Made by a program: the position numbers and the translations under genes
The notes under the pieces: model-generated
Seen by the model: the letters and a program-made list of their open reading frames with translations, nothing else
What the model was told of the DNA's origin: nothing
Databases searched by the model: none
Assembly: GCA_048013815.1 (NCBI GenBank)
Contig: CM106586.1
Span: 19,654,001-19,718,000, forward strand
Source of the DNA: Setoptus koraiensis
Taxonomy: Eukaryota; Animalia; Arthropoda
DNA length: 64,000 nucleotides
Reading direction: 5' to 3'
Shown here: positions 2,284-40,537 of the stretch, in pieces
Position numbering within the stretch: position 1 is the first letter of the stretch
Layout of the letters: the number at the start of each line of letters is the position of its first letter

Positions 2284-3649
2284 AAACGCTGTGAGCCGGC
2301 CGAGAGCGGAGACATCGGCAACAAGTTGCGTAAACGCTCGACAGGTTGAGGAAGCCGCTTCGAGCTGGCGTTGTGCGCGCCGGCCAGACCGACAAATGTA
2401 CGCCACAAACAAATACGCAACAAGCACAAAATGGGAATAACAAACACAAAATAGGAATAACAAACAAACAAACGACCAACAGGCCAATTACCGTTGCCGG
2501 CAGAAGCGCTCCTTCGACAGCCGCATCAATTCTCAGCCGGTGTGTGTGTCTCGAATCGCTGTCTCGCTCGATATTCTCGTTCTTTCTCGATATTCTCGCT
2601 CTTTCTCGACTTGCTTGATATCTCGACTTGCTTGATCTGTCGATTTGCTTGATCTGTCCATGTGCTCGCTGTGTCGATGCTGTCGCTCTCTGTCGGTATT
2701 AGTGCGCTTAATATCCGACAACAACTTGCTGCTCGATCGGTGTGCGTCGGTGATGTAACCGTGATTCTCATGGGGGCCGCCAGCCGACACAACAACAATC
2801 CCCCGTCTGGCTGGCCGCTGTTGGCGGGCCGGACGCGATTCGATTCAAATTTAAATTCGAGCGACTGCCCAAAACGACCGGTCGGCGTGTCGGAACGAGG
2901 CGTCGTCGCAGCGACGCATCGGATAACGTCCGCATAACGGGTCGTCAATAACGGGTCGCGAATGACGGATCGCAAGCGATGATAAGGCCGCAAAAAAGGA
3001 TTGCCGGAATAATGGCGACGGCGATGATTGCCGGCGAGCACAGGCTGAGCCGATGCGCTTGTGATCGCAACCACTTGTTGCTGCCGCATCCCGATCCTGT
3101 CAGGCCGATTCTGTTGCGAAATATTATTGTTAGCGTTCGATGATTGGCCGCGATCACGCGATCGTCGGGCCGCCGATTTGTGGGTGCTGCCGCCCGCCTG
3201 AGCCCGACTGGGCTCGCTTGAACGGGGCGCGCGAGCTCGCCAATTGAGAGATCGCTGCTCAAGTTGTTGCGATATCGGCAACAAGTTGCGCTCGTCGCAC
3301 TGGCCGAGAGAGGGTGCTGCAACGAAAGTGATCGCCGTTGTCGCTGCTGTCGCTTTTGCCGTTTTTCATGTTGGTGCCGTTGTTGTTGCCGTTGTTGTTG
3401 CCGCTGTTGTTGCCGTTGTTGTTGCTGTTGCGACCACAGTCGGTTGGTGTTGGCGGCGCCAATTTGCGGGCTCGCCGACAGGAGGAAGCGCTCGCATTGA
3501 TAACAGTGATAATATTGCCGCCATGGCCAACATTGCCCGTTGGTCGGCCCGTGGATAATTGCTTGGCTGCGTGGAGTTTTGTGCAAACTTCGGCCGCCGT
3601 TCCGCGCCCGCGATTCGGCCCGTTGGCGGCCCGAGCACAATGGCCACGA

Positions 3650-3792
3650 CGGCAACAACAACGACAACAACACCGACAACAACAACGACAACAACACCGA
3701 CAACAACAACGACAACAACAACACCGACAACAACAACGGCAACAACAACACCGACAACAACAACGACAACAACAACACCAACAACAACAACT
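3650..3792. repeat. CAA-based compound microsatellite
   Basis: caacaacaac(g/a/c)... run of about 140 bp. Confidence 0.9.
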
Positions 3793-4629
3793 GCAAACGG
3801 CCCATTCAATCATCATTATAAATGAGATCGCAAATGAGATTCGTGCCACCATTGGCTGTTGGCATTCATTGCGACGCCCACTTAATTGAGTGGCCAAACT
3901 CAGCGCCGGCCAGCAACAGCTGACCGGCCCGAGGAAGCGCCGGGGCCAATGTCGTGAATGTTGGCACTTTCGTGGCGGCTTCCTGGCGAACGTTGGCGGC
4001 CCGAGCTTGGCGGCCCGAGCGGCTCGAAAGAAGCGACACGAGAGACAGAGAGAGAGAGAGAGAGAGCGACACGAGAGAAAGCGACGAGAGAAAGCGACAA
4101 GAGGTGATACAAGCGACGCAAGCGCCAAATGCGAGCGAAAGTGGCGAGAATCAATTTAAAATTAATTGTATCAATGTATGACCATCACGACTCGCCCGGC
4201 TGAGTGTGTCATGATATCCGCTGCCATTGATACTGAATCAATAGTCTCGGCAACGGCCGCCAGAGTAATGAAGCAATAAAAGGCTCGCTCTCATCGGCGC
4301 TAATGGTGTGTGAGAAGGCTGCGGATGGAGAGAAAAGAAAAAGAAAGGATGTGAGCCGGACAATGGCCAGAGGAAGCGTCGTCGTCGTCCTCCCACGTAA
4401 ACACGGCGCTTACTGCACTTGCCGCACACAACACAACAGCGACAACAGCAACACAACAGCAACAGCAACAACAACTGGTTGTGTAATGGTTACGTAACAA
4501 ATGGACGATCCGGATCCGAGGCAAGACTTTACATAACAATATTGCCGCTGCGGCCAGAACACGATTCGCTCGGTGCGGCCACGATGGCCGGCACTCATGA
4601 ATCGATTGGGATCATGAGCAACCACCACG

Positions 4630-4678
<49 letters not shown>

Positions 4679-7600
4679 CCAAGCCAACAACAAACATTAC
4701 GGCAAACTCACAAGTCGGCAGCTCACTAGTTGTCGGTCGAGTTATCGGAACGGCGGAAGTTGGCGGAAATTAGCGCGAAAATTAAGCAAATTACTCTTGC
4801 ACTTGTTGCGTCATTTCGCGTCATGTCAGTGGCGGACTGGCTGGCTGTGAGCGGCCGTGAGTGACCAATGTCAATCGCACTGGCCACTCGGCGTCGGGCC
4901 CCGAGCGTGGGCTGCAACACACTGCCAAGGATATTGGTCGCTCATTGTTATTATTTTCTAATAATTATCATGTTGCTCGGTGATTGTGTTACGTCATTGA
5001 TAATCAACGACCGTAATTAATAATCATCGCGCCAGTGCGTGCGTGTTTATCGCCCCATCGCAGCAGATCACAATGGCTTGTATGTACATACAATGTGTTT
5101 ATTTGTGGATATTTGCTCATTTCGTTGGTACCTTGACCCGCCGGCCCGCCCGCTTGTGCCCGTAATAATCTGATATTACTGTCCATGTTTTGTACAATAC
5201 GGGCCGCACAATACAATGTTTTGTACGGGCCGGTTGGCAATCTGACATTGCCGGCCCGGCCCGGCCAGCACCAACAACAACAACATTATCGTCACTCCCA
5301 ACTGCAGACTGTGCACTGCAGTTTGCAAGCCGGCGAAACTGCCAAGCTCGTTGGAAGCTCATCGAGCGATTGTGATGCAATAACGCCTTGATACTATTGC
5401 TTGGCACTGACAATGGTCGTCGGCCAGCGATACCAAAACATCAATCACGTCCAGCATTGTTGTTGTTGTTGTTGTCGGTATTAATAACAGCACTACATGC
5501 ACCGTGAGCAGCGATGCCGAGAGAGAGAGCCGTGCAACAGCGCCAACAAGTGGCCGAGAATGGATTGCGCAATAAAGGAATATGGTTATTAATTTCGCTC
5601 ACTCCGCGGCCAACAATTAATAATCGCGTTCTTTGTTGGCCGGCCGAGCGGCCACTAATGCTGCCGGCCAATCTCGTTGTTGCCGTTGTTGTTGTTGTTG
5701 TTGTTTATTTGGCTGCTGCTGCTGTTGCGCAATTGTTGTTTAAATGGATAGATAGGCCGTGGATAGCCGAGCGGCGAGTTAATTGCAGGGCCGAAATAAA
5801 TCTTGCTTGTCGTCATTACGCAACGCTCACTATATATTGCCGACAGGATTGCGATTTATTTTGGATATATTTGGGTTATATTTGGGATATATTCGGGATA
5901 TATTCGGCCATTGGACAATGGCGGCTGCTCGCAACGGCTCATTTCTGCCATCATTTGTGTTGTTGTTTGGGTCGTTATTTCTGCTCTCATTTCTGCTGTT
6001 GGTGGCCCCGCGTTCAAGGCGACGAGCGCGCCAATTAATTTCCAACGATCGCAACCGATCCGTGCCGAGCGTCACGTACCTGTCGAATGTGTGCGATTCG
6101 CCCACTTGCCGCCATTCTGGCCGGCGCCGCTCGACCGGTGGTTGTCGGCGCTGCTGGCGCGCTTGCTGTTGCTGTTGCCGTTGCCGTGCTGCCGGCACGG
6201 CGAAATTACTTTCGCCAACCGAGCACTAATTGCCCGCTGTGCCTCCGTGCCAGAGTTCGCGCGGCCCGCGGCCCCGTGAACCCGGGCGCGGACGCGGACG
6301 AGCAGGAGGCCGTCACCGGCGCGAGTGCAAGACGGCGCTGCGAGCAGCGGCCACGTGACAGAAGCGCCGATCGCAACGAGCCAACGGGCAACGTGTGAAC
6401 CCCTCGCCGCTTCGAATTCTTCGCCGCTTCGAACTCTTCGCTGCTTCGAATTCTTCGCTGTGCGTTCGCTCCGAACCGGTCGCCACTGGTGGCCGCGCTG
6501 GCCCCCGATGGCCGCTCAAAGTCAAATTGCGGCGTCAACTCGCTGCGATTGCGCGTCATTAGCCAACAATGAGGGGCCGTCAAGAAATTGGGAGCGCGCC
6601 CGGCAGGCGTGCAAATTGCGTCGCTGTCGTTGTTTTGGGTGTTGTTGCTGTCGGTGTTGTTGCTGTCGGTGGTGTTGTTGTTGTTGTGTTCGGTGTTGTC
6701 GTCGCCGTAAATTGCAAACAAATTGCCCGTCACCGACCGGCCGTCACCGAGTGCGGCGCGGTCCACAGCGGTCCGTCCGCTCGGTGTCCCGTGCGCGCCG
6801 TTTGCAGCGGGTTAGTGCGCGCCATTGCGGCAATGTTTGCAATTCGCTTGCAACGCTCGCGAACGCAACCATCGCGAGAATCGCCACTCTCGCCGCTTCT
6901 GTCGCCCCGCAAATTGCAAGTCACAGTCTGCGCGCCGAGCCGGCCGAACTAGACCAACAGCAACAACAACAGCGGCAACAACAACAACAACGACAGCAGC
7001 AGCAGCAGCAACAACAACAACAACGACAGCATTAACAGCAGCACCAACAACAACAGCGACAGCAACCGCTGCCGCGCTTGCAATGCCGGGCAATAAATCA
7101 CCCGCTTACCTGGGGGAGCCCGCATCAATTAGGAGCCGATTGCCAACAGCTGGCTGCCGACAGTTACATGACGGCGGCGCTGTCCACGCTCAGCCCATCA
7201 GAATGCGAATCTTCGGCTGCCGATCCCTCGGACCTGCGACCGAGCCGCTCGAACGTTCGAACCTGCGACCGAGCCGCCCGAACCTTCGACCGAGCCGTTC
7301 GAACGCTCGGACGTTCGGAACATGGCCGGCCAATTGCAGCCAGCAGCAACTCAATGCGCACACATATCAATACATGCGCCTATCAATACATATCGACACA
7401 CACAGTTCGCCGTGATGCGGACAAGACGCATCGGTGTGTCGTGGACGCGATCATTTTATGCAAATTAGCCAATTGTAACGGAAACGGCATTCGCTGCGAA
7501 CAGCGAGAGTCTCGGCTGTCGGCTCGCAAGCGGCTGTCGGCCCAGTGGCGCCGAGCGGGCTATTTTGAGCCGTTGGGCAGGGCCCGAGCGGCTGGCAGCG

Positions 7601-10600: not shown

Positions 10601-10720
10601 TGTTTGGCCGCACTGCTGAATGTTCTTTCAACAACTGCAACAACATCGCCAACAGCAAACACAACGGCAACTACATCGACAACAACAACTGCATCGACAG
10701 CAACAACTGCAGCGGCAGCG

Positions 10721-10721
<1 letters not shown>

Positions 10722-10804
<83 letters not shown>

Positions 10805-10816
10805 ACAACAACAACA
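10722..10816. repeat. (CAGCAA)n hexamer microsatellite ending in (CAA)n
   Basis: Read directly; source of the poly-Q, poly-C and poly-AT/VA ORFs at 10.5-11.1 kb. Confidence 0.9.
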
Positions 10817-13800
10817 GCGGCCACATCGACGCCCGCTACAACATCGCTCACGCATGAGACGAGGCAACAAAAATGAGAGCGACTGGCCGCGATCATCATA
10901 TTCATCATGGCAACGGCGCACATTGCGCAACGGCGCTCATTGCGCAACGACCGGCCAGGTAAGGGCCGGCTCGCTCTCGTTTGACAGAAACAAAACCGTT
11001 TCTATCAAACGGCGAGCGAGCTTGCGCAATCGCCGCTTCGATTCGGGCTTCGAGCGAACGCAAACAAAGTTTTGTGCCGGCGATTCGCCTCTGATGATCA
11101 GAATCTGATCGCCGCAAAATCGCCGGCCATCCCCACCATCGATGACGGTCGATGATAGCGCATGACGGTCGATGATGGCGCATGATGGTCGATAGCGGCC
11201 CGACGACCCGGTGTCGCCTCGTCGCCCGCCGTGCGACTGTCGGCCCGACAGTGTCGACGACGAAAATCTCGGGCCGGAAATCGCTGACAATTCTCGATCC
11301 GATGAAAAATATCCCATGAAACATACTGGCGCCATCGTCGAAACGGGGCCCCTCGTCGGCCAACCCGATTCGCGGTGGCCGGACGAACGCCCACCGGACT
11401 CTGGTGACGGGAGCGGCCGCCAGAGCGCGGCGAAATGTAATGCTAAACTCACCTGTTGCGCGTTGGGCTGCGTCAGTCGTTTGTATGAATGTCTCTATTA
11501 TTGTGACTGCCTCAGGTGACTGGCTCATTTATTTGGCTGCAGCTCATTCATTGAGGGTCGGTCATCACCGGTGTGTGAGTGTGTGTGTGTGTGTGTGTTG
11601 CAGCCACTAATGATGATTTAAGAGTGAGAGACGAGAAATAAGAAGAAATTGATTAGTTCATTTGGCGCTGATTACTATCACTGCAAACTGCGAAACGATC
11701 ATTAATGGCAGCATCGCCATTACGCAATTAACGCAATCATTAGCGTCATTCATGCCGAGATTGTAGTCAGATTGTTGTCAGAGATAGCCGGCTGGCTGGC
11801 TGCGTTTATCGCAAACAGTTTGTGTCTCGCAAACAGTTTGTGTCCCGTAAACGGCGCACTCGGCGTATATCAGTTTATTGCCGCTGTCACGCTGTTATCT
11901 ATTGCCTGCGAGCCGGCACACTGCTCCCTACCGGCCGTTACGTATAACATTACGTAACACATTGCCTAGCATCGGCAAGTGTTTATACGCAGTTCATATC
12001 GGTTTATATCCGATCAGCCGAGTGCAGTATTGCTGTCGGTGGTGTCATGACAACGACGCTACATTTGATCGTTTGATCATTATTATCTCCGGCCATCTAT
12101 CGATTCGGGCCGCTAATAGCGCCCGCCGCGGCCGCCGCCGCAAACATACCCCAAATGTACATTGCGAGCGCCTCTGCGCCGATGCCGACGATGATTATGT
12201 TTGCGCATGATGCCCATGATCTATGCCCGTCTATGACTATATAACGGTCATTATAATCGCCCGATTAGAAACAAAAATTGATTAGCTCGCTCAGATGCAG
12301 CGACCAGCGCAGTGTCGCTCGCTGAGCCGGCCCGACGGCGCGCATGAGTCGCCCGAGGAAACGGCAAATTGATTGAGCGTTGCTCCTCTGGCCGCCGGCC
12401 CGCTCGCCGGCCAGCGTCGGGCCGGCAGCCACGATGCGCGGCCCGATGGTCGATTGAGATGGCGCCGAGATCGGCGCATTGGCCGCCCAAATCACCGCAT
12501 CGGCGCCGAAATCACTGCAGTGGCCGCCGAAATCACGGCCAAGGCTCGAAATAGCGCCAACAGCAGTGTTGCGTTTCTGCGCCAATTACGCAAGTCAATT
12601 AAGAGCTTTTAATAGGGCTCATCAGCGTCACTGTCGGGCCGGCCAAGCGGCCGCTGGCTGTCGCTGACCGGCGCTAGTGGCCAGTCAATGGCAAGGTCTC
12701 GGCGGCAAATCGTCGCAGCATCGTCGGTGTGAGAGCGGCACGATTTTTCGGGCGAAGCGTCCTCGTCCTCGGCCAGCAAATGATTGATGATGACGCAACG
12801 GGCCGTTCTTTTGTAGCGGGCGCTAGCGGTCGCCCGTGAGTGTTGCACAACTTGTGTTGTTGTGTAACTTGCGTTATGTGTGACTTGTGTCATGCGACTT
12901 GTGTTACGTAACACAAGCGCATTGTTTTCACCTGTCGGACGCGAACGGCGATACTCGGCTCGGGTTACGCGCCTTTGGATCGACGATCGGCCGCGATTTC
13001 GCTCGAGGTTCTCGGCCCGAGCAGGCCGCTACGAGTGCGCTTGTGGGCGGGCCGGGCCGGGGCGCTCCGTTGAGTGCGCGCGGACAGTCGGATCGCTGAC
13101 TGGCCATATAAATATACACATATATATCTGAAAATATTATTAATATAGATATTATAAACAATATACAAATGCGAAAATATACAAACGTGAGAACAACGAA
13201 GGCGCCGGGCGAAACTGAGCTGAGGGCGCGGGTTGTAATCGCGCAAGCGCACGCCGGCCAGAAGAACCGTGGCCGCCGGATTAGCGCGCCGAGCGGCTCA
13301 AACGGGATCAGCGGGCGCGCGAAAGCGGGTGGCAGCGCCACCGAACACACAAGCGGCTCACGGCTAGCCGGCCGGCGAACGCGGCGGATGCGCGCCCGCA
13401 ATTCGAAGCGAGCGAACGCTTTCAATTCGGTCGGCTTGCGACCATCGGCCGGCGCCGGCGGGAATCGACGGGCGCAAAGTGCGATAAGAAGCCTCTTAGC
13501 GGTGGCTTAAGCGTCTCGCCGGCTGCCGCGGGATTGCCGGTGCGGCGCGCGGTGAGCCGGGCTCATTGGGCGCGCGAGCAGCCGATGACCGTGCCAAGAT
13601 TGCGCTGGCAAGCGAGATTGGGAGTGCGCGCGCGCTCACTCAACAACAATCGTAATGCGACGATAATCGCCCGACAATCGCCCAGCAATCGCCGGCCGTG
13701 ATGGGGCTGCGAATGGAGTCATCGCCAGGGATAATCCGCGCGTCTGGCGCACACCGACGAGCGGCGGCCGAGCCGTGCCGACGAAAGTGCTTGCGTCGGT

Positions 13801-29648: not shown

Positions 29649-29663
29649 CGCAATTGCAGCAAA

Positions 29664-29980
29664 TCTCGGTGAAAAAGTCCTTCAGAATACCCCTCTTCTA
29701 ATAAGGGTCGGTACCAACGCAAGTCACGGAGCAGTCAAACCTGTTACTAAGACTATTGATGAGTCTACAGATATTTATTACTTTTCGAAAAGTTCACTCG
29801 AGTTACACTTCGAACCATAATCGATTCCAATGAGAAGAAAATGTCATCCTGATCTACTGATACCCAATTGAATAAAAATCAAATAGAATCCTACAATTAT
29901 TTTACAACATAGATCTCGAATAAGCATTGTTGTCATCATTTAGTGTTGTTTCCGCCCTCTGCTCCACGCAGCAAAAACTT
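29664..29980 (+). pseudogene. Duplicated fragment of the prolyl endopeptidase C-terminus, stop and 3' UTR (inverted relative to 31763-32080)
   Basis: Translates LGEKVLQNTPLLIRVGTNASHGAVKPVTKTIDESTDIYYFSKSSLELHFEP* versus PREP LGDKVDQDTPLLIRVDTDAGHGAGKPITKTIDEYTDIYCFLINSLKLRFEP*; the UTR part differs at only a few positions. Confidence 0.92.
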
Positions 29981-31698: not shown

Positions 31699-31923
31699 GG
31701 TTAACGGTAAATCCCGGGATCATTTCACATGGGCAACTATCAATATATCAAGGTAGTTTCTAAAGTTTTTGTTGCGTGGAGCAGAGGGCGGAAACAACAC
31801 TAAATGATGACAACAATGCTTGTTCGAGATCAATGTTGTAAAATAATTGTAGGATTCTATTTGATTTTTATTCAATATGGGTATCAGTAGATCAGGATGA
31901 CATTTTCTTCTCATTGGAATCGA

Positions 31924-34270
31924 TTATGGTTCGAAACGTAACTTGAGTGAATTTATCAAAAAGCAATAAATATCTGTATACTCATCAATAGTTTTAGTAA
32001 TAGGTTTACCTGCTCCGTGACCTGCGTCTGTATCGACCCTTATTAGAAGAGGGGTATCCTGATCGACTTTATCACCTAGATAATACTGCATTTGAGCCGC
32101 AAATTTCAAACTGTGAGCAGGTACTACCCTATCGTCGTGATCAGCAGTCAGCAATAACGTGGCCGGATACTTGTCGGTATCTGGTATGTTATGATACGGC
32201 GAATATTTAATAAGGTTTTCGAAGTGTTCCTTTTCATCCGGTGAACCATAGTCCGATGTCCATGCGTGACCTATGGTAAATGTATGGAATCTTAGCATGT
32301 CCATCACACCAACATGAGCTATAGTGGCGCCAAACAAATCTGGCCTCTGATTAGAAACGGTGGCCACTAGGAGGCCGCCATTTGAACCTCCCTCAATTGC
32401 CAACTTCTCACTGGATGTATATTTATTTTTGACGAGATATTCAGCTGCGTAAATGAAATCGTCGAAACAATTTTGTTTGTTCAGCAATCTACCAGAATCA
32501 TGCCAATCTTGTCCTAGCTCGCCACCACCTCTGATGTTGGCAACGGCAAAAACGCCATTAACATTTTTTAGCCAAATTAAACGGTTGATATTGAAAGTTG
32601 AGGTGACCTGATGGTTGAATCCACCGTATCCATACAGTAGGCAAGGACTTTCACCGTTCAAGTTTATGTTTTTTCTGTGCACAAGGAACATCGGCACTTT
32701 AGTACCGTCCTTGCTATCATAGAATACCTGATTGATGACAAACTCATCGGGATCGAAATTCCTCGGTTTAGATTGGCGCAAAATCTGTGGCTCATTCTCT
32801 AAATTATTCAAGTTAAAATGATAAGTCATTCCAGGGGTTAAGAAAGATGTAAATTGAAAAAAGATTTCGGTGTCTTCGCGCCGTCCGCTAGATTTGGATA
32901 TTGTGCCCATTGAAGTGGAGAATTTTTTGATTAAGTTACCCTCTAGCTCGTGCAACTCTAAATAGTGAACAACCTTTCTAAGATAATTTACCAAAATATA
33001 GTCCTTATAGTTGCACGTGAATACCTCTGCCCAAGTAAGAACATCTTCATCGTGTGATGGTATAACATCGGTCCAGTCTTTTGGGTCCGGTTTGTTCAAG
33101 TCTATCTTGACAATGCGATAATTTTTGGCATCTAGATTTGTTCTAGCGTAGAAGATATTTCCATTGTTGGTAACGTACTCGAACTTTGCACCGAACTTGT
33201 CGTAGATCGGTTTAAGAATTAGTCTTTTGGCATGTTGGAGATCAGGGTCGTGCAAATCGCAAACGAACCACTGATTGTCGTGACAACCCTCGCCGGGAAA
33301 CACATTCAGATATCGACCGTCATCAGAGACGCAAGCATCAACAAGCCATTTGGGATTTTGCGGAAAATCCACAGCTAGCCTGTCGTAGATTTGGTCTGAA
33401 TACAATCTATGATAATACAACGAATGGTTTTCATTTGATTCGACTTCAGAGACTTTGCCCTCATGCTCTGGGTATTTAGCGTAGAAGAATCCAGAATTAT
33501 CATGCAACCAGGATATCGATGTAAATTTACAACGCTCCAGCTTGTCCGGTAGATCCAGGTTTGTCTCAAGATCTTTTATGAAGATCTCAATCCAATCTGA
33601 ACCACTGTAACTCAAGCCATAAGCGAAAAACTTTCCATCGTTAGAGAATGCGGTCAAACTTAATGCAACGGTTCCATCATCACTCAGTGTGTTGGGATCA
33701 AAAAAAATCCTGGGCTCTGAATCTAATGTGTCCTGTTCATAGAGAACGGATTGGTTTTGTAATCCGGAATTTCTATAAAAGTAATATTTACCTCCACGCT
33801 TGAATGGGCAGCCAAATTTTTCGTAGTTCGTATTGTCAGTGAGTTTCTTCTTGATGGCCGCACGATGGGGGCACGAGCTGACGTAAGGCATTGTTATACA
33901 ATTTTGTACGTGAATGAAATCTTTTGTCCTTACTGAGTTGGGATCTTCGAGCCATCTGTATGGATCTGTCACCTAGTTATAGAGTAGGTTATAAAATTGT
34001 ATTAGACTCTGAGTCATTTGTACATATGTTTATCTGATGGTGATGGAGACGAAGAGATTAGCTTACCAGATGACCGTGTAGATCATCAACAAGAAGGTCA
34101 TCACGATAAGCTTCAGGATACTGGAATCTACTAAGACTGGTAGTTGGCATAACTGATGCAGACAGTGTCGGGTCGATCCTGGGGCGTTTGGCTCTTGAGA
34201 AAGTTTGTCTAGTATGACTAAAAATACTAGTAACTATCCTACGGATAGTTGGGCACGAATTTCGAGACAT
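31924..34270 (-). CDS. PREP: Prolyl endopeptidase (S9A), 750 aa, 2 exons
   Basis: Exon 1 34270-34067, intron GTAAGC...TAG (34066-33973), exon 2 33972-31924; YPEAYRD...HGH/VTDPYRWLED start, catalytic GGSNGG, DHDDRV and AGHGAGK motifs. Confidence 0.95.
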
Positions 34271-34618
34271 TTGTTGAGTGATGCATTATGATTGGTATCT
34301 ACTCCTATTTATACTGATAGCTAGGAGCTTGACCGGCTGCGAAATTTTCCATAGCGCATGCTATTTGATAGAGTAGAGCAGTCCGTATGAGTGCGTTTTC
34401 GTACCTACATTTTCCTTACGCACGAGGCGCCTTGAGCCGAACAGCGCGCAACTGCACCTGCTCTGGAGCACGCTAGAGCAAGCAATTAAAAAGTGAAACA
34501 TTTTACGGAACAGTCTGCTTTCAGCTTCACATTTTTTCGCCAACGCCAGCACCTCTGGCGGATTTTTCTTGAACCCAGTGTGAGTGCATTGGAAAAAGGA
34601 CACAGTAATATGAACAAC

Positions 34619-35004
34619 ATGCACACAAATCTAACAGCACATGAGCATTTTAGCCGACAACGTTACGAAAAAGATGGAATAACCGCCTGCCCATGCACGC
34701 CTGTGACTAGTCGATGTAAAAACTCGCATCACCACTCTATTTAACCTAATGGGCTTGTTGTTAAACTTTAACGGACACCGGCCCTCAGAAAGACACGACC
34801 AACTTGGATGAAATCTATTCGAATTCAAGATAGAAATATTTTTCAATTCACACCATCAGCTGCCCACAACAGACAATGCTCACAAGATTGAGGCGAGTGA
34901 AACAATGGCAAACATTCACACGAACATGGTGGCTGTATGACGCGAAATGGCAGGATCCCTTTGACAGTGGCCTACTTATATCCAGGTATCTAAGTGGAAA
35001 GCAG
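34619..35004. repeat. Left arm of inverted duplication (partner 38775-39140): MRPL13 upstream region plus first 43 codons
   Basis: 34737-34985 matches the reverse complement of ~38794-39042 with one mismatch; flanks are homologous but diverged. Confidence 0.95.
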
Positions 35005-36036
35005 AGATGCATCCAGCAACCAGATTTCGACGACAGTCGTCGTGTTGTTGTGGCCAACGTCGTCCCCGTGCAATCATACAAGCACCAGCTACGACACACA
35101 GACCTAGTGCCAGACGACGACAAATCAGTGATGTTAGATCCATTTTCAGATGCCTTCGAGGTAAATCCTGACTTCATTGAGAGCATGGCACCTGGATGGA
35201 AACAGAGCTTCAACTTGGCCTCCTATGTAAATAAGTCCAAAACGTTACAAACCTTCCTCAGCATGGGCGTTAGTCTATTCGACATTGAAAGCATTAGCAG
35301 AAAGAATGCCATATATTTCTTAAGTCTGGATTTCGAAAGAGATTGCGCTGCACACATAAGATTTCTAGTCGACAATGGTTTAAAGACGGACAGATTAGGT
35401 TGGTTTTTTTCCGAGAACCCCGTTATATTCAAAGAGTCCTTGGACGACCTACAAGTTCGATTAAACTATCTGAAGTCGAAAAAATTCACTCGATCTATGA
35501 TAGCCCAGATGATGAATAAGTCGGCTTTAATCTGGTCGCAGAATACAAAAACTATGGATCACAAACTCGGGCTTATTCAGACTGAGTTCCGACTTCCAGG
35601 GGAATATGTTAGAAGAATAGTCACTAAACATCCTACAGCAATTTTAATACCACATGGACAGATGTACATCGTGCGGTTCTCATTCCGAGAGGAGTATGGA
35701 TTCGATGAAGCTCAATTGCATCAATTGTTATTGGCTGAACCGTCTATACTGGAATCGCAAAGATCAGAGATGTTCAACCGTTTCCATTTAATCCATTCTG
35801 AAATGGAGCTGAGCCTCGATATGTTGATCAAGTTCCCCAAACTATTCACATGTCCAATTATGGATGTTAGGTGGCGTTACCGGTATCTTGCCAAACTGAA
35901 AAGAGCTCAATTTGATCCAAAAGTACCCCTGTACGTTCCTCCTAGTGCTTTTTACGACTGCGAAGACGATGTTTTTTGCAAAAAATACGCCAAGACGAAC
36001 ATAGAAGATTATAAGCTCTTTTTGAAGTCGGTCTAG
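34876..36036 (+). CDS. MTERF3: Mitochondrial transcription termination factor 3-like with MRPL13-derived N-terminus, 386 aa, intronless
   Basis: LASYVNKSKTLQ...MGVSL, LDFERD...IRFL.D.G, NP.IF...LDDLQVRLNYL.SKKF and C-terminal AQFDP..PLYVP...DEDDVFC match MTERF3/MTERFD1; the true start codon is uncertain. Confidence 0.88.
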   Translation: MLTRLRRVKQWQTFTRTWWLYDAKWQDPFDSGLLISRYLSGKQRCIQQPDFDDSRRVVVANVVPVQSYKHQLRHTDLVPDDDKSVMLDPFSDAFEVNPDFIESMAPGWKQSFNLASYVNKSKTLQTFLSMGVSLFDIESISRKNAIYFLSLDFERDCAAHIRFLVDNGLKTDRLGWFFSENPVIFKESLDDLQVRLNYLKSKKFTRSMIAQMMNKSALIWSQNTKTMDHKLGLIQTEFRLPGEYVRRIVTKHPTAILIPHGQMYIVRFSFREEYGFDEAQLHQLLLAEPSILESQRSEMFNRFHLIHSEMELSLDMLIKFPKLFTCPIMDVRWRYRYLAKLKRAQFDPKVPLYVPPSAFYDCEDDVFCKKYAKTNIEDYKLFLKSV

Positions 36037-36068
36037 GAGTCATCCGTGGAACCACGTGGCAATTCGTT

Positions 36069-37595
36069 CTACATTTGTCTTGGGATCAATCTCAAGTCGA
36101 TTCTTCTCTCAGGAGTTGTGACCATGCGCAACTTTATCTCAATGTTATCATCTATCACCGGCTCAATCTTGAAATTTGTTACTATTCTAGATATTAGGAG
36201 TCGCATTTGTAACTCCGCCATCCGCCTACCAATGCACGCTCTTACTCCTTTTCCAAAAGGTAAACTCGCGTATCTATTTCTAGTCATTGGACATGATATA
36301 GTTGGATCAGATGAGGAACGGAGCCATCTCTCTGGAAAAAACTCTTGAGCTTTGCTGAAATATTTTTCATCACGACTTGTAGTGAATAGAGAATATATAA
36401 TCGTTTTACCTGCGGGAAGTTTGTAGTTGTACAAATTTATATCACAATCCAGAGTCCTAGCGATAAAAGGAGCGATCGGATACAAGCGTAAGGTTTCCTT
36501 AATACACGCTTCAGTATAAGACTTATGATCCGGTGAGCGGTCCCGTGTGATTGTTTTTGACTCAGAGAAAATGCTCTCTTGATGAGAGGTATTTTTACTT
36601 AAAAGATACAAAACCCATTGTACTGCATTTGCTGTGGTATCAGTTGCAGCCAAGATTAAATCAACGATAGATTGGACGACCTGTTTCTCATTCATATGTA
36701 GAATCATATCTTCTGCAATGCTCGTGGAATCCAGATGTTCTCCGGAGGCTTTGTATGCTTTCGATTGTCCTTTCTTTGTGATATGAGATGTGCATCGGTC
36801 TACATAGAAGCTGGCCAATTCAATTGACCTGGACATATGACGGTCGAACTTCTTCCAAACGCCCAATCCTAATGCCCAAGCAAGCTTTGGTGGAACAATT
36901 TGGAATGTTGAAGTAGTTTCGAACACACCATTTACGCTACGAACTAGTTCTAAAGACTCCTTATTAGCGTCATTGAGGCAATCTAATCTTCGATCAAAAA
37001 GTATTATACCTGTAGACTCTATTGACCATCTATTTAGATCGTTCTTCAGATCTTCAATCAAAATTGATCCATCCTCTCTTTGGTGCCTATTCCATCTGGC
37101 AAATAAATCATCGATAGCGTCATTAAAAAGATGTATACGTGTGCGAATCCTACGTTCAAAGTTTTGTGGTTCAAGGAAGACTTTATTCATAAATCGACGA
37201 GTTTCGCCCCATTCTTGACCACGCATGAAAAATAAGCCGCGCTGTACATTTTTTATTTCATTATATAACTCCCATGCTGGTGGTACATTGTGATGAGGAT
37301 ATTTACCTTCGTAACGGGTTACTTGCTCGAAGATATCTGCATCCGCGACAAAGATAAGTTCAGTTGTGCCCAAGCTTTGTCTGAATATAGGACCCAACAA
37401 TACATGTTGCGTATCAATATGACGATGCAGATAACCAGGTCCACCTTCTTTAATAAGCTCGATCATAGGTATTCCTCTAGGTTTTGGTATATCTTCGCAT
37501 CTTAAGAGATTGCCCGAGTGAAGCTTGACCACCTGTTGGCATCTTCTTGTAATGTCCAATATTCTGCCTGAGGATACTAGCTGCAAGGATGTCAT
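36069..37595 (-). CDS. CYP315A1: Mitochondrial-clan cytochrome P450, ecdysteroid 2-hydroxylase (shadow), 508 aa, intronless
   Basis: Heme motif PFGKGVRACIG, ETLR, PERW, AATDTT; N-terminal GG..YLHRHID..H...GPIFR..LG and EGKYPHH..P.AW.LYN...RGLFFM.G.EW match shadow. Confidence 0.88.
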   Translation of the reverse strand: MTSLQLVSSGRILDITRRCQQVVKLHSGNLLRCEDIPKPRGIPMIELIKEGGPGYLHRHIDTQHVLLGPIFRQSLGTTELIFVADADIFEQVTRYEGKYPHHNVPPAWELYNEIKNVQRGLFFMRGQEWGETRRFMNKVFLEPQNFERRIRTRIHLFNDAIDDLFARWNRHQREDGSILIEDLKNDLNRWSIESTGIILFDRRLDCLNDANKESLELVRSVNGVFETTSTFQIVPPKLAWALGLGVWKKFDRHMSRSIELASFYVDRCTSHITKKGQSKAYKASGEHLDSTSIAEDMILHMNEKQVVQSIVDLILAATDTTANAVQWVLYLLSKNTSHQESIFSESKTITRDRSPDHKSYTEACIKETLRLYPIAPFIARTLDCDINLYNYKLPAGKTIIYSLFTTSRDEKYFSKAQEFFPERWLRSSSDPTISCPMTRNRYASLPFGKGVRACIGRRMAELQMRLLISRIVTNFKIEPVIDDNIEIKLRMVTTPERRIDLRLIPRQM

Positions 37596-37876
37596 ATTAT
37601 CTCACAGGGTAACCTAGGGGAACTCAACTCTCGGATTTTTTTCTAATGGGTCTGTCTTTGTGGATCTTGACGAGCTGAGTGTAACCCGAACAACCGATAA
37701 CATCAACCCATCTTCATAGCCTCCGTAACGCATGTGGGAGGGTGGCGTGTATGCCAAAAAACGCTTCTGTGCATGCGCAACGCCGAGAGAAGACCGGATT
37801 ATTCCAGAAACAAAAAATAATCCGGTTAAGATTTCATTAGGATTGGTATAAAGTATAATAAGAACAACAAACAAAG

Positions 37877-38200
37877 ATGATTTTATTCTGTCCCAATTGT
37901 GGCAATAGACTACTACTATCAGAGGGAGACACATCCTACGTATTCAAATGTCTCACTTGCCCTCATATACAGCGTGTCAAAGACAGGATAACTGCCGCTA
38001 AATACCCTAAACTAAAAGACGTAGACGATGTTCTTGACGATGCCAATACATGGAAGAATGTCGACCAAGCTGACACAAAATGTCCCAAGTGTGAATTCGA
38101 AAAGGCCTACTTCATGCAGTTACAAACTAGATCAGCTGACGAGCCCTCAACCACGTTCTACCGTTGTGTCCAATGTGCATACAATTGGAAGGAAAATTGA
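37877..38200 (+). CDS. POLR3K: RNA polymerase III subunit RPC10/C11, 107 aa
   Basis: FCPNCGN..L zinc ribbon, KLKDVDDVL, CPKC...AYFMQLQTRSADEPSTTFYRC. Confidence 0.93.
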   Translation: MILFCPNCGNRLLLSEGDTSYVFKCLTCPHIQRVKDRITAAKYPKLKDVDDVLDDANTWKNVDQADTKCPKCEFEKAYFMQLQTRSADEPSTTFYRCVQCAYNWKEN

Positions 38201-38345
38201 CAAATTCTGTATAGTCTGAACCTATCTAATCTATATTTATTTATCGTAAAGCATACAGAATTAACAAGTTACATTCTGGGTAGACCTGCTTGTGCTAATG
38301 ATATTACAAGTTGTTAAATAATTGTGAAGACAAAAAAAATCACTT

Positions 38346-38903
38346 TCAACTATCTTGATCCAAACGAAAGTCCGGGTGGTAATCGAACAACTTTGGAAAT
38401 TTGTCCAGTTCTTCTGCACTGCACTCCTCAATTTTCTTTGGCACAACCCTCAATTGTCTGATTTGGGCTGTAATATTTTGTTTAATGTCTTCAGGTATCT
38501 TTTCATCTCGAAACATCATTAGTCTGGCAAAGAATTCTTTTCTTCGCAAACTGTCCCTGTTGTATCTACAGCTTTTATAAATGGCACGCTCCAAGACAAA
38601 TGTGGGATCTTTCTGATGCAACGACCACGCGGAAGCCCATTTGGCACCTCCGGCATATTGAGTATGATGAAAGAAGAATCTCCACTTCCACTCTTGATTA
38701 GGTAAGGCCACATGAGCGGCATTTATGACTACCACGTGATCTCCACAATCTAGATCGGGGTGCCAGATGGGCTTTTGCTTTCCACTCAGATATCTGGATA
38801 TAAGTAGGCCACTGTCAAAGGGATCCTGCCATTTCGCGTCATACAGCCACCATGTTCGTGTGAATGTTTGCCATTGTTTCACTCGCCTCAATCTTGTGAG
38901 CAT
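38346..38903 (-). CDS. MRPL13: Mitochondrial ribosomal protein L13 (uL13m), 185 aa, intronless
   Basis: QW.TF.R.W..YDAKWQ.P..S...I..YL.GK.KPIWHP..DCGDHVVVIN...F.HT.Y.GG signature. Confidence 0.93.
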   Translation of the reverse strand: MLTRLRRVKQWQTFTRTWWLYDAKWQDPFDSGLLISRYLSGKQKPIWHPDLDCGDHVVVINAAHVALPNQEWKWRFFFHHTQYAGGAKWASAWSLHQKDPTFVLERAIYKSCRYNRDSLRRKEFFARLMMFRDEKIPEDIKQNITAQIRQLRVVPKKIEECSAEELDKFPKLFDYHPDFRLDQDS

Positions 38904-39140
38904 TGTCTGTTGTGGGCAGCTGATGGTGTGAATTGAAAAATATTTCTATCTTGAATTCGAATAGATTTCATCCAAGTTGGTCGTGTCTTTCTGGGGGCCG
39001 GTGTCCGTTAAAGTTTAACAACAAGCCCATTAGGTTAAATAGGATGGTGATGCAGGTTTTTACATTAACTTGAAGTCATTTCGTCTTTATCGTAACGTTG
39101 TCGGCTAGAATGCTCATGTGCTGTTAAGATTCGTGTGCAT
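38775..39140. repeat. Right arm of inverted duplication (partner 34619-35004)
   Basis: Reverse complement aligns to 34619-35004, with an indel-bearing diverged outer flank. Confidence 0.95.
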
Positions 39141-39542
39141 GCATAAATAGCGCACTCGCACAGCGTGTCTGTTCTCAGGTTCTACAATGCATTTTCAAAA
39201 AATAAAAATATATCACGGAGGACAGCGTAGCATTGTCTGTGGAAATTGCGGCCAACCTAAACAACAAACAATCAATCAATTTCAGCCAGATTATTTACTT
39301 ATACAGAATCAAACAAACAAATTACAATTATTATTTTCAATAACAATAACACCCATGTTAATTTATTTATCCACTCATACAAGCTTGTAATATAATCAAA
39401 ATTTTCTTCATAACGATAAGTAGGAAATTCCATATAAAATTATTAAGCACTATTATATCAGAAAAACACATTCACAAATAGACACATAAAACCGCGCTCG
39501 GTCGAACCAAAATACTGATAATAATAACCAATCATTTAGATT

Positions 39543-40043
39543 ATGATGGAAACTGGAGCCCTATTGCTCAAGAAACAGCTAGCAGAATTAAATAAGCATC
39601 CTGTGGAAGGTTTCTCGGCTGGTCTTATAAACGATAATGATATCTATAAATGGGAGGTTATGATCATTGGACCTACAGATACATTATTTGAGGGAGGTTT
39701 TTTTAAAGCTCATTTAGAATTCCCACGTGACTACCCTGTCAAGCCCCCTAAGATGAGATTTATCACCGATATATGGCATCCAAACATTGGCAAGGATGGT
39801 CATGTTTGTATATCTATTCTGCATGAGCCAGGAGATGATCAATTTGGTTACGAAAAAGCCTCAGAGAGATGGCTACCCGTCCATTCAGTAGAAACTATCT
39901 TGATTAGTGTTATATCTATGCTTGCCGACCCAAACGATCAATCACCCGCAAACGTAGACGCAGCTAAAGAATGGCGTGAAAACTATCCGGAATTCAAACG
40001 CAAAGTGGCAATGTGCGTTAAGAAGAGCCAAGAGGACATTTAG
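39543..40043 (+). CDS. UBE2G1: Ubiquitin-conjugating enzyme E2 G1 (Ubc7 family), 166 aa, intronless
   Basis: LLLKKQLAELNKHPVEGFSAGL, WHPNI...G.VCISILH.PGDD..GYE..SERWLPVH acidic-loop signature. Confidence 0.95.
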   Translation: MMETGALLLKKQLAELNKHPVEGFSAGLINDNDIYKWEVMIIGPTDTLFEGGFFKAHLEFPRDYPVKPPKMRFITDIWHPNIGKDGHVCISILHEPGDDQFGYEKASERWLPVHSVETILISVISMLADPNDQSPANVDAAKEWRENYPEFKRKVAMCVKKSQEDI

Positions 40044-40159: not shown

Positions 40160-40537
40160 TTATTTAAAAGCAAATTTTCTTGAAGCACGCATAGTCGCTA
40201 GTCTCTTTTTGTCCTCTTCGAATTTGTCCCTTAATTCTTGCAATTGTTTCAACTTGCTCTCTCGTATCTCGAATGAATAGAAGTTCAATAGTTTATCTTT
40301 CTTTTCCTTCTTCAGCTTCTTGGCCTTGTCTTTGATGATTGCCCGTTTGGTTGGGTCCTTACCCTTCTTAGATCGCACAGTTATCCATCCGTCCTCGTCC
40401 GGTTCGACAGGAGCCCTCAGTCTATCCTTTAGCTCTTTAGATCTTGCTTCGTATTGTTCCAACGTCTGTTTGATTTCTTTTTTTAATTGTTCGACATTAA
40501 CTATGGAATTATTGTATTCTTGCATAAACAATTCCAT
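40160..40537 (-). CDS. RRP7A: RRP7-like protein, C-terminal domain only, 125 aa
   Basis: PDEDGWITV...LLNFY.FE.RESK...L.ELR.KFEEDKKR...MRA.RKF is the RRP7 C-terminal motif; in-frame stop a few codons upstream of the ATG. Confidence 0.8.
   Translation of the reverse strand: MELFMQEYNNSIVNVEQLKKEIKQTLEQYEARSKELKDRLRAPVEPDEDGWITVRSKKGKDPTKRAIIKDKAKKLKKEKKDKLLNFYSFEIRESKLKQLQELRDKFEEDKKRLATMRASRKFAFK

Follow-up and report, generated by a model that had tools for sequence, protein, structure and literature searches.

In a 64,000-nucleotide stretch of the Setoptus koraiensis genome (contig CM106586.1, positions 19,654,001 to 19,718,000; hereafter the window), two inverted arms about 3.7 kb apart carry the starts of two unrelated genes, that of mTERF3 on the left and that of MRPL13 (uL13m) on the right. 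The left arm is a reversed copy of the MRPL13 5' end, comprising about 260 bp of upstream sequence and 43 codons, that is fused in frame to mTERF3. As the best explanation of the pair, and one that we regard as likely, we propose a static inverted segmental duplication that has been kept partly identical by interlocus gene conversion. According to this proposal, the 5' end of MRPL13 (some upstream DNA and at least 75 codons) would have been duplicated in reverse orientation before this mite separated from its sister species, and the reversed copy would have been fused in frame to the body of a relocated mTERF3 gene, displacing the N-terminal presequence that mTERF3 had of its own. The two arms would then have drifted apart in the sister lineage, to 76% identity; in the lineage of the window, non-crossover recombination would have replaced mTERF3-arm sequence with that of the MRPL13 arm on at least two occasions, first over a tract (34617-35004) that is now about 16% diverged and then, very recently, over a tract (34737-34985) that is 0.4% diverged. 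As an outcome, mTERF3 and MRPL13 would begin alike, with ~260 bp of upstream DNA and 43 residues in common. The structure is thus proposed to be of an ordinary, known kind, with a neat chimeric gene and a neat history.

The inverted arms and their near-identical core

The arms were detected by a repeat search and then aligned with MAFFT, which provided the coordinates. The repeat search returned a match of 322 nt at 94% identity plus a 52-nt extension, and the alignment placed the arms at 34617-35004 and 38775-39142, their unequal lengths being due to a 21-bp indel at 34685-34705 and a 1-bp indel. Within the arms, 34737-34985 and 38794-39042 constitute a core of 249 bp with a single mismatch (T at 34785 versus C at 38994, on the same strand of the other arm; 99.6% identity), in which the longest exact run is 200 bp and a further exact stretch measures 48 bp. 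Outside the core, 19 of the 118 aligned arm sites differ, as compared with 1 of 249 within it (Fisher p = 2e-9), and the probability of finding at most one difference in 249 sites at the flank rate is 5e-18. Weaker homology at the coding level runs on past the left arm to about 35075-35100. A preceding sequence-only reading had placed the arms at 34619-35004 and 38775-39140, with a one-mismatch core of ~249 bp between clearly diverged flanks; this description is borne out in every respect, apart from the two outer ends, which now lie at 34617 and 39142. The parts of the two arms are as follows.

34617-34736, plus strand: outer flank of the left arm; non-coding, 140-260 bp upstream of the mTERF3 ATG, with the 21-bp insertion at 34685-34705; assigned to the older conversion layer
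34737-34985, plus strand: core of the left arm; 139 bp of upstream sequence or 5' untranslated region (5'UTR) and the first 110 nt of the open reading frame (ORF); assigned to the youngest conversion tract
34986-35004, plus strand: inner remainder of the left arm; codons 37-43, with three differences in 19 nt, all synonymous; assigned to the older layer
35005-35100, plus strand: decayed uL13-derived coding relic, attributed to the original duplication and now within the N-terminal region of mTERF3
38775-39142, minus strand: right arm; native MRPL13 5' end and upstream sequence, with the inner remainder at 38775-38793, the core at 38794-39042 and the outer flank at 39043-39142

Exactly two copies of the arm are present in the whole genome (48.76 Mb, two contigs), and the arms are therefore not a transposon. 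A noncoding RNA or tRNA was likewise rejected as the cause of arm conservation, since searches of the arms and the cassette with Rfam and ARAGORN gave no credible match.

Repeats are prone to over-polishing in long-read assemblies, and the core might accordingly be an artefact of assembly or polishing, the arms being in truth more different from each other or one of them nonexistent. The reads were examined through k=31 Logan contigs of runs X1, X2 and X4, which come from three independent studies, together with those of a further run, X7. All four junctions between the arms and their flanks are reproduced in the contigs of X1, X2 and X4, and the 249-bp core appears as a contig of its own, a single sequence at double depth, both in X1 (258.9, versus 108-129 for the flanks) and in X4 (168.5, versus 82-97). 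The junctions in three studies and the roughly twofold depth of the core show that no such artefact is involved, and the same architecture is found in the sister species; we give this explanation almost no credence.

A ribosomal N-terminus on mTERF3 and its proposed overwriting

The core contains the starts of both the mTERF3 and the MRPL13 ORF, which encode the same first 43 residues. Genes were assigned from ORFs, with Pfam searches on the seven ORFs in and beside the cassette, and the two that concern the arms are listed here.

34876-36036, plus strand: chimeric mTERF3 ORF, 386 amino acids; Pfam mTERF (2e-16) and Ribosomal_L13 (1.2e-4)
38346-38903, minus strand: MRPL13 (uL13m); Pfam Ribosomal_L13 (7.5e-30) over the full domain; 95% identical to the MRPL13 of the sister species

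In the mTERF ORF, residues 16-67 match positions 1-52 of the Ribosomal_L13 profile (E = 1.2e-4) and are followed by mTERF repeats, whereas the L13 domain is complete only in the MRPL13 ORF; the right arm is therefore the native 5' end of MRPL13 and the left arm the reversed copy. The MRPL13-derived N-terminus of mTERF3 is ~75-85 residues long, and the conserved mTERF3 core begins near residue 86. The named homologues of the mTERF gene are mTERF3/MTERFD1 of eriophyoid mites, including Fragariocoptes and Aceria, names that point firmly to an eriophyoid (gall) mite as the source of the window. Because mTERF3 has a single match in its own genome, and MRPL13 a single full copy apart from the arm, the chimera is the working mTERF3 gene.

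The sister species is known from one 7.5-kb Logan contig, L011, which carries the closest relative of this mTERF3 (P0001, 78% amino acid identity). Its mTERF3 also begins with an L13-derived segment, albeit a diverged one that can be followed to about residue 75 and departs from the MRPL13 of the same contig at nine of the first 43 residues. Between the arms of the sister species, identity is 76% over 245 nt, the longest exact run measures 22 nt as compared with 200 nt in the window, and the detectable homology starts about 38 bp before the ATG. In both species, the chimeric ORF is continuous across the junction (386 versus 389 amino acids, with an in-frame 3-codon indel in the captured part). 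Codons 1-43 of the mTERF3 copy in the sister species have a ratio of nonsynonymous to synonymous divergence (dN/dS) of about 0.23-0.31, indicating some constraint, although synonymous distances in these codons rest on about 27 sites, which are too few for dating the arms of the sister species; between the two species, codons 44-70 have a dN/dS of about 0.9 and are nearly neutral.

The L13 segment is absent from six more distant eriophyoid mTERF3 proteins, which have ordinary, unrelated N-termini. In a search of the clade, the chimera was found in L011 only, the next relatives of mTERF3 and MRPL13 having at most 52% and 69% identity, respectively, and no exact-protein matches to the mTERF3, MRPL13 or POLR3K of the window from other assemblies or strains are on record. 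In the outgroup contigs that we fetched, mTERF3 lies between ABHD16 and aPKC, and MRPL13 is head-to-head with RRP7 and adjoins POLR3K. The presence of the chimera in both species and the absence of the L13 segment from the outgroups would date the duplication and fusion to the interval after mTERF3 reached this locus and before the two species split. As to the outgroup neighbours of mTERF3, ABHD16 is present in the S. koraiensis genome as two full-length copies far apart on chromosome 2 (G000:C2:1229584-1231287 and C2:13871793-13873481), and aPKC lies on chromosome 1, split into several exons. One outgroup MRPL13 call is fused with a Ribosomal_S2 domain (435 amino acids), possibly a fusion made in gene calling.

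The history of exchange between the arms was read from the identities of four segments, in which w denotes the window, r the relative (the sister species), L the mTERF arm and R the MRPL13 arm.

Inner flank: wL-wR 56.7%, wL-rL 67.8%, wR-rR 83.3%
Core coding sequence: wL-wR 100%, wL-rL 83.6%, wR-rR 90%; the 43 residues equal those of MRPL13 in both species
Core 5'UTR part: wL-wR 99.3%, wL-rL 46.6%, wR-rR 56.1%
Outer flank: wL-wR 83.8%, wL-rL unalignable, wR-rR 73%

The inner flank groups by gene and not by species, and the duplication therefore predates the split; this is the old layer. The core coding sequence of the mTERF3 arm is nearer to the MRPL13 of the sister species (90%) than to its mTERF (83.6%), and the 43 residues are those of MRPL13, which identifies MRPL13 as the donor and mTERF3 as the recipient. 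In the outer flank, the two arms of the window are closer to each other (83.8%) than the orthologous MRPL13 arms are (73%), which points to a second and older transfer after the split, and the three differences in 34986-35004 occur at about the density of the outer flank. The whole of 34617-35004 would thus be an intermediate layer, transferred after the split and now about 16% diverged. Rough Jukes-Cantor distances are 0.18 for this layer, 0.004 for the core and 0.335 for the orthologous flank. At least two conversion events after the split are needed, one for the layer at about 16% and a later one for the layer at 0.4%. The sequence-only reading had suspected ongoing gene conversion, and the comparison with the sister species supports it: the arms of the window are 99.6% identical in the core and 83.8% identical in the outer flank, as compared with 76% for the arms of the sister species and 73% for the orthologous outer flank.

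These features are the hallmarks of interlocus (ectopic) gene conversion, or concerted evolution: a sharp-edged tract of near identity lies inside older homology, the inner flank groups by gene and the core by species, paralogous sequences within a species are closer than orthologous ones, and the donor can be identified. We see no essential difference between the locus and such systems.

In principle, purifying selection acting on a common promoter and N-terminus could maintain the identity of the core with no exchange of sequence; both genes need expression and mitochondrial import, and the 43 residues are invariant in the MRPL13 of the two species. However, the identity takes in all synonymous sites, at a synonymous distance (dS) of about 0.85 between the MRPL13 orthologues for the same codons 1-43, as well as 139 bp of 5' non-coding DNA that is only 56% conserved between the species. 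Since identity extends over synonymous and non-coding sites that differ strongly between the species, selection is not the explanation. The mTERF arm of the sister species also tolerates nine amino acid changes in the 43 residues. This possibility thus appears to be effectively refuted by the between-species comparison, and we attach next to no probability to it.

Alternatively, a non-homologous mechanism, such as template switching during replication, might have duplicated or replaced part of the sequence a second time, very recently, and thereby produced the identical core. On the upstream side, the older layer (34617-35004) exceeds by about 220 bp the homology that can be recognised in the sister species, and an ordinary conversion tract requires homology at both ends. 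However, the young tract lies wholly inside pre-existing homology and has clean boundaries with no junction insertions, which is the signature of conversion; moreover, non-coding sequence is saturated between the species, and the left arm of the sister species may have decayed upstream. We therefore consider a non-homologous origin of the core very unlikely, and return to conversion of the mTERF3 arm by the MRPL13 arm in what follows.

The first 20 residues common to mTERF3 and MRPL13 include five basic and no acidic residues and, judged by this composition, resemble a mitochondrial import signal, or presequence. Most likely, the captured module supplies mTERF3 with an import signal and with the proximal promoter of MRPL13, and the shared arm probably gives these two mitochondrial gene-expression factors a common proximal promoter and a common import signal. 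The last conversion restored the MRPL13 version of the 43 residues without loss of the only mTERF3 gene, and the two versions of the module are therefore interchangeable, as would befit a generic module for import and expression. In one of the smallest animal genomes, the locus thus offers a clean and datable case of three processes, namely the reverse duplication of a gene fragment, its recruitment and its repeated overwriting by the parent gene, in which an essential mitochondrial factor took its new N-terminus, and probably its promoter as well, from the captured fragment.

Orientation of the enclosed block

The arms enclose the mTERF3 body, a CYP315A1-like cytochrome P450 gene, POLR3K and the MRPL13 body, with PREP and a UBE2G-type ubiquitin-conjugating enzyme (E2) gene outside, which is the gene content that had been assigned from the sequence alone. 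The genes other than mTERF3 and MRPL13 are listed here.

31924-34270, minus strand: PREP (prolyl oligopeptidase), with the main exon at 31924-33972 and a probable first exon within 34058-34270; Pfam Peptidase_S9_N and Peptidase_S9, the exons having been examined separately
35997-37596, minus strand: CYP315A1 (shadow)-like P450 segment, ORF 36069-37595; Pfam p450 (8e-79)
37877-38200, plus strand: POLR3K (RNA polymerase III subunit C11); Pfam Zn_ribbon_TFIIS (1.3e-20) and Zn_ribbon_RPB9
39543-40043, plus strand: UBE2G-type ubiquitin-conjugating enzyme; Pfam UQ_con (7.2e-50); right neighbour of the block, divergent from MRPL13
40160-40537, minus strand: RRP7; assigned by Pfam

PREP is the left neighbour of the block and is divergent from mTERF3, and its first-exon region is conserved with the sister contig (tblastx). 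The gene order of L011 is PREP (minus strand), mTERF (plus), P450 (minus), POLR3K (plus) and MRPL13 (minus), and the contig is collinear and co-oriented with 31915-39319 of the window, at about 80% nucleotide identity.

The sequence-only reading had proposed a candidate flip-flop cassette. On this view, homologous recombination in the core would turn the 3.8-kb block around time and again, populations or tissues would contain both orientations, and the regulatory context of mTERF3 and of MRPL13 would switch between the PREP side and the UBE2G side. Several features speak for such a system: a perfect inverted repeat of 200 bp, or one of 249 bp at 99.6% identity, has its copies only 3.7 kb apart; repeated conversion indicates that the arms interact; and a crossover in the core leaves both ORFs intact, so the statement that it would regenerate both genes was formally true. 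There are also precedents, in a yeast chromosome XIV region with homogenised inverted repeats (PMC9731477) and in recurrent inversions mediated by human inverted repeats, one of which exchanges the first exons of AQP12A and AQP12B (PMC3961182).

On the other side, the second orientation is seen nowhere, although the contigs available here break at the edges of the core, so that they give no joints across it and orientation within the species is unreadable from them. The orientation of the window is that of the sister species, in which the divergence between the arms is too great for recombination; the window therefore has the ancestral state, which fits zero or an even number of inversions. 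The core is much shorter than the inverted repeats of the documented systems, which are of kilobase scale, and the yeast region itself is reported to be stable on laboratory timescales (PMC9731477). Pfam searches of the seven ORFs in or beside the cassette returned only mTERF, P450, TFIIS/RPB9 zinc ribbon, L13, peptidase S9, UQ_con and RRP7 domains and thus no recombinase gene, which also argues against a dedicated switch. The functional effect would be small, since ~260 bp of upstream sequence travels with each arm; for the same reason, the promoter swap that had been envisaged was overstated, because this ~260 bp is common to the arms (139 bp of it in the near-identical core), and what would stand of it is the change in distal PREP-side or UBE2G-side context. 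Taken together, these points lead us to consider a recurrently flipping cassette unlikely.

The static duplication with gene conversion remains our preferred explanation, and the following points weigh against it. Conversion shows that the arms recombine, and a crossover from the same intermediates would invert the block. The DNA contigs (k=31) end at the core, which leaves room for a minority or polymorphic inverted form, and the shared orientation rests on a single comparison with one sister species. For mTERF3, a start at the shared ATG and from the shared promoter is deduced from conservation of the ORF; the contigs of run X7, which cover gene bodies only and are RNA-like, are not assignable to one arm across the core. 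Finally, X7 holds a second version of the 5'UTR part of the core, with four differences at 38908-38958, that cannot be assigned to an arm.

Run X7 carries another organism label, and its gene-body-only coverage is possibly that of RNA. Its mTERF3 haplotype has 10 substitutions at 35631-35769 (140 nt), eight of them at third codon positions, and 38878-38999 occurs in it in two versions, of which one equals the window and the other is the variant with the four changes; otherwise its contigs match the window exactly. Comparison of the variant core with the sister sequence is uninformative, the non-coding sites being too diverged. The variant may be an allele, or it may represent an mTERF3 arm that has escaped conversion in another strain.

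The 200-bp perfect inverted repeat would be a possible substrate for occasional inversion of the 3.8-kb block by homologous recombination, and gene conversion can thus make a recombination substrate that is absent from the sister species. The data neither show an inversion of the block nor call for one, and any that occurred would not amount to a regulated switch. We think it unlikely that the four-gene block (mTERF3, CYP315A1, POLR3K and MRPL13) is a segregating or recurrent micro-inversion in gall-mite populations. Were it so, gall mites would offer a small-scale animal parallel to the yeast flip/flop region, with two mitochondrial gene-expression genes exchanging their distal regulatory neighbourhoods and every gene left intact; with both orientations found, the few flip/flop regions known in nature would be joined by a very small one from an animal.

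Further parallels come from human inversions mediated by inverted repeats, the FLNA-EMD inversion among them. In the human inversion HsInv0241, in which the first exons of AQP12A and AQP12B are exchanged (Aguado et al. 2014, PMC3961182), the breakpoints lie, as they would here, inside the shared 5' parts of opposed genes, both of which stay intact; in the human inversions, however, the repeats are whole paralogous genes or duplications of kilobase scale, and polymorphism has been genotyped, whereas the two unrelated genes here have only a captured 5' module in common. The yeast chromosome XIV 'flip/flop' region (Salzberg et al. 2022, PMC9731477) is also a multi-gene block bounded by an inverted repeat that is continually homogenised within lineages, but the yeast repeats are about 4 kb long and both orientations are documented within and between species, as compared with 249 bp and one observed orientation here.

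With respect to origin, the geometry of the arms appears to match the staggered-break model of inversion formation. In the inverted duplications of the Drosophila melanogaster group that are explained by this model (Ranz et al. 2007, PMC1885836), as in the window, the two ends of a short chromosomal segment each bear one copy of a genic sequence that was ancestrally unique (in our case the MRPL13 5' end), the copies are oppositely oriented, and one of them is a fragment of a gene. The present locus differs from them in that the fragment has been recruited as the in-frame N-terminus of another gene and was later re-homogenised, and in that inversion of the enclosed block is here putative, the outgroup neighbourhoods being too rearranged to give the ancestral order and ABHD16 and aPKC being dispersed in this genome.

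Neighbouring genes and further rearrangements

A second inverted duplication lies next door, at 29663-29980 and 31763-32081. It duplicates the 3' end of PREP (204 nt at 90% and 114 nt at 97% identity) and brackets about 1.8 kb, so that both ends of PREP adjoin an arm of an inverted duplication; it is the only other long inverted pair in the window. This proximity recalls the breakpoint reuse of staggered-break systems (PMC1885836). On the other side of the block, UBE2G lies between MRPL13 and RRP7, and RRP7 (40160-40537) is reversed relative to other eriophyoid mites (the contigs of P0050 and P0051; L019:9333-11308), which suggests a further micro-inversion at the upstream region of MRPL13. 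Together, the neighbouring inverted duplication and the reversal of RRP7 suggest several micro-rearrangements with nearby breakpoints.

The best named matches of the P450 gene are CYP315A1 of Tetranychus and other arthropods. Another copy of the gene lies at a distance of 3.5 Mb, in a 1,600-bp segment at G000:C2:23216728-23218327 (L004:1501-3100) that is 99.8% identical to that of the window. The copies differ at three of the 1,600 nucleotides (36099, 36519 and 36532), with one amino acid change (P355L), and the duplicated segment starts 1 nt before the ATG and ends 72 nt beyond the stop codon. Because the distant copy includes the last 40 nt of the mTERF3 ORF, it was copied from the locus in the window. 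The duplication is backed by double depth and by matching alternative flanks in X1, X2 and X4, and an origin as a retrocopy was rejected, the ends having no poly(A) or T-run. The sequence-only reading had stressed that the putative switch would include a moulting-hormone enzyme; a CYP315A1-like gene is indeed enclosed by the arms, but the point is weakened by the nearly identical copy outside the cassette.

Between CYP315A1 and POLR3K, two short elements (37601-37696 and 37713-37798; ~85-95 nt each) recur on both chromosomes in at least 15 copies with 76-90% identity and may belong to a miniature repeat family. Elsewhere in the window, related tandem repeats of short period (9-15 nt) form blocks at 3593-3837, 6910-7106 and 10602-10870, spaced ~3.2-3.6 kb apart, which constitute the direct-repeat family D1.

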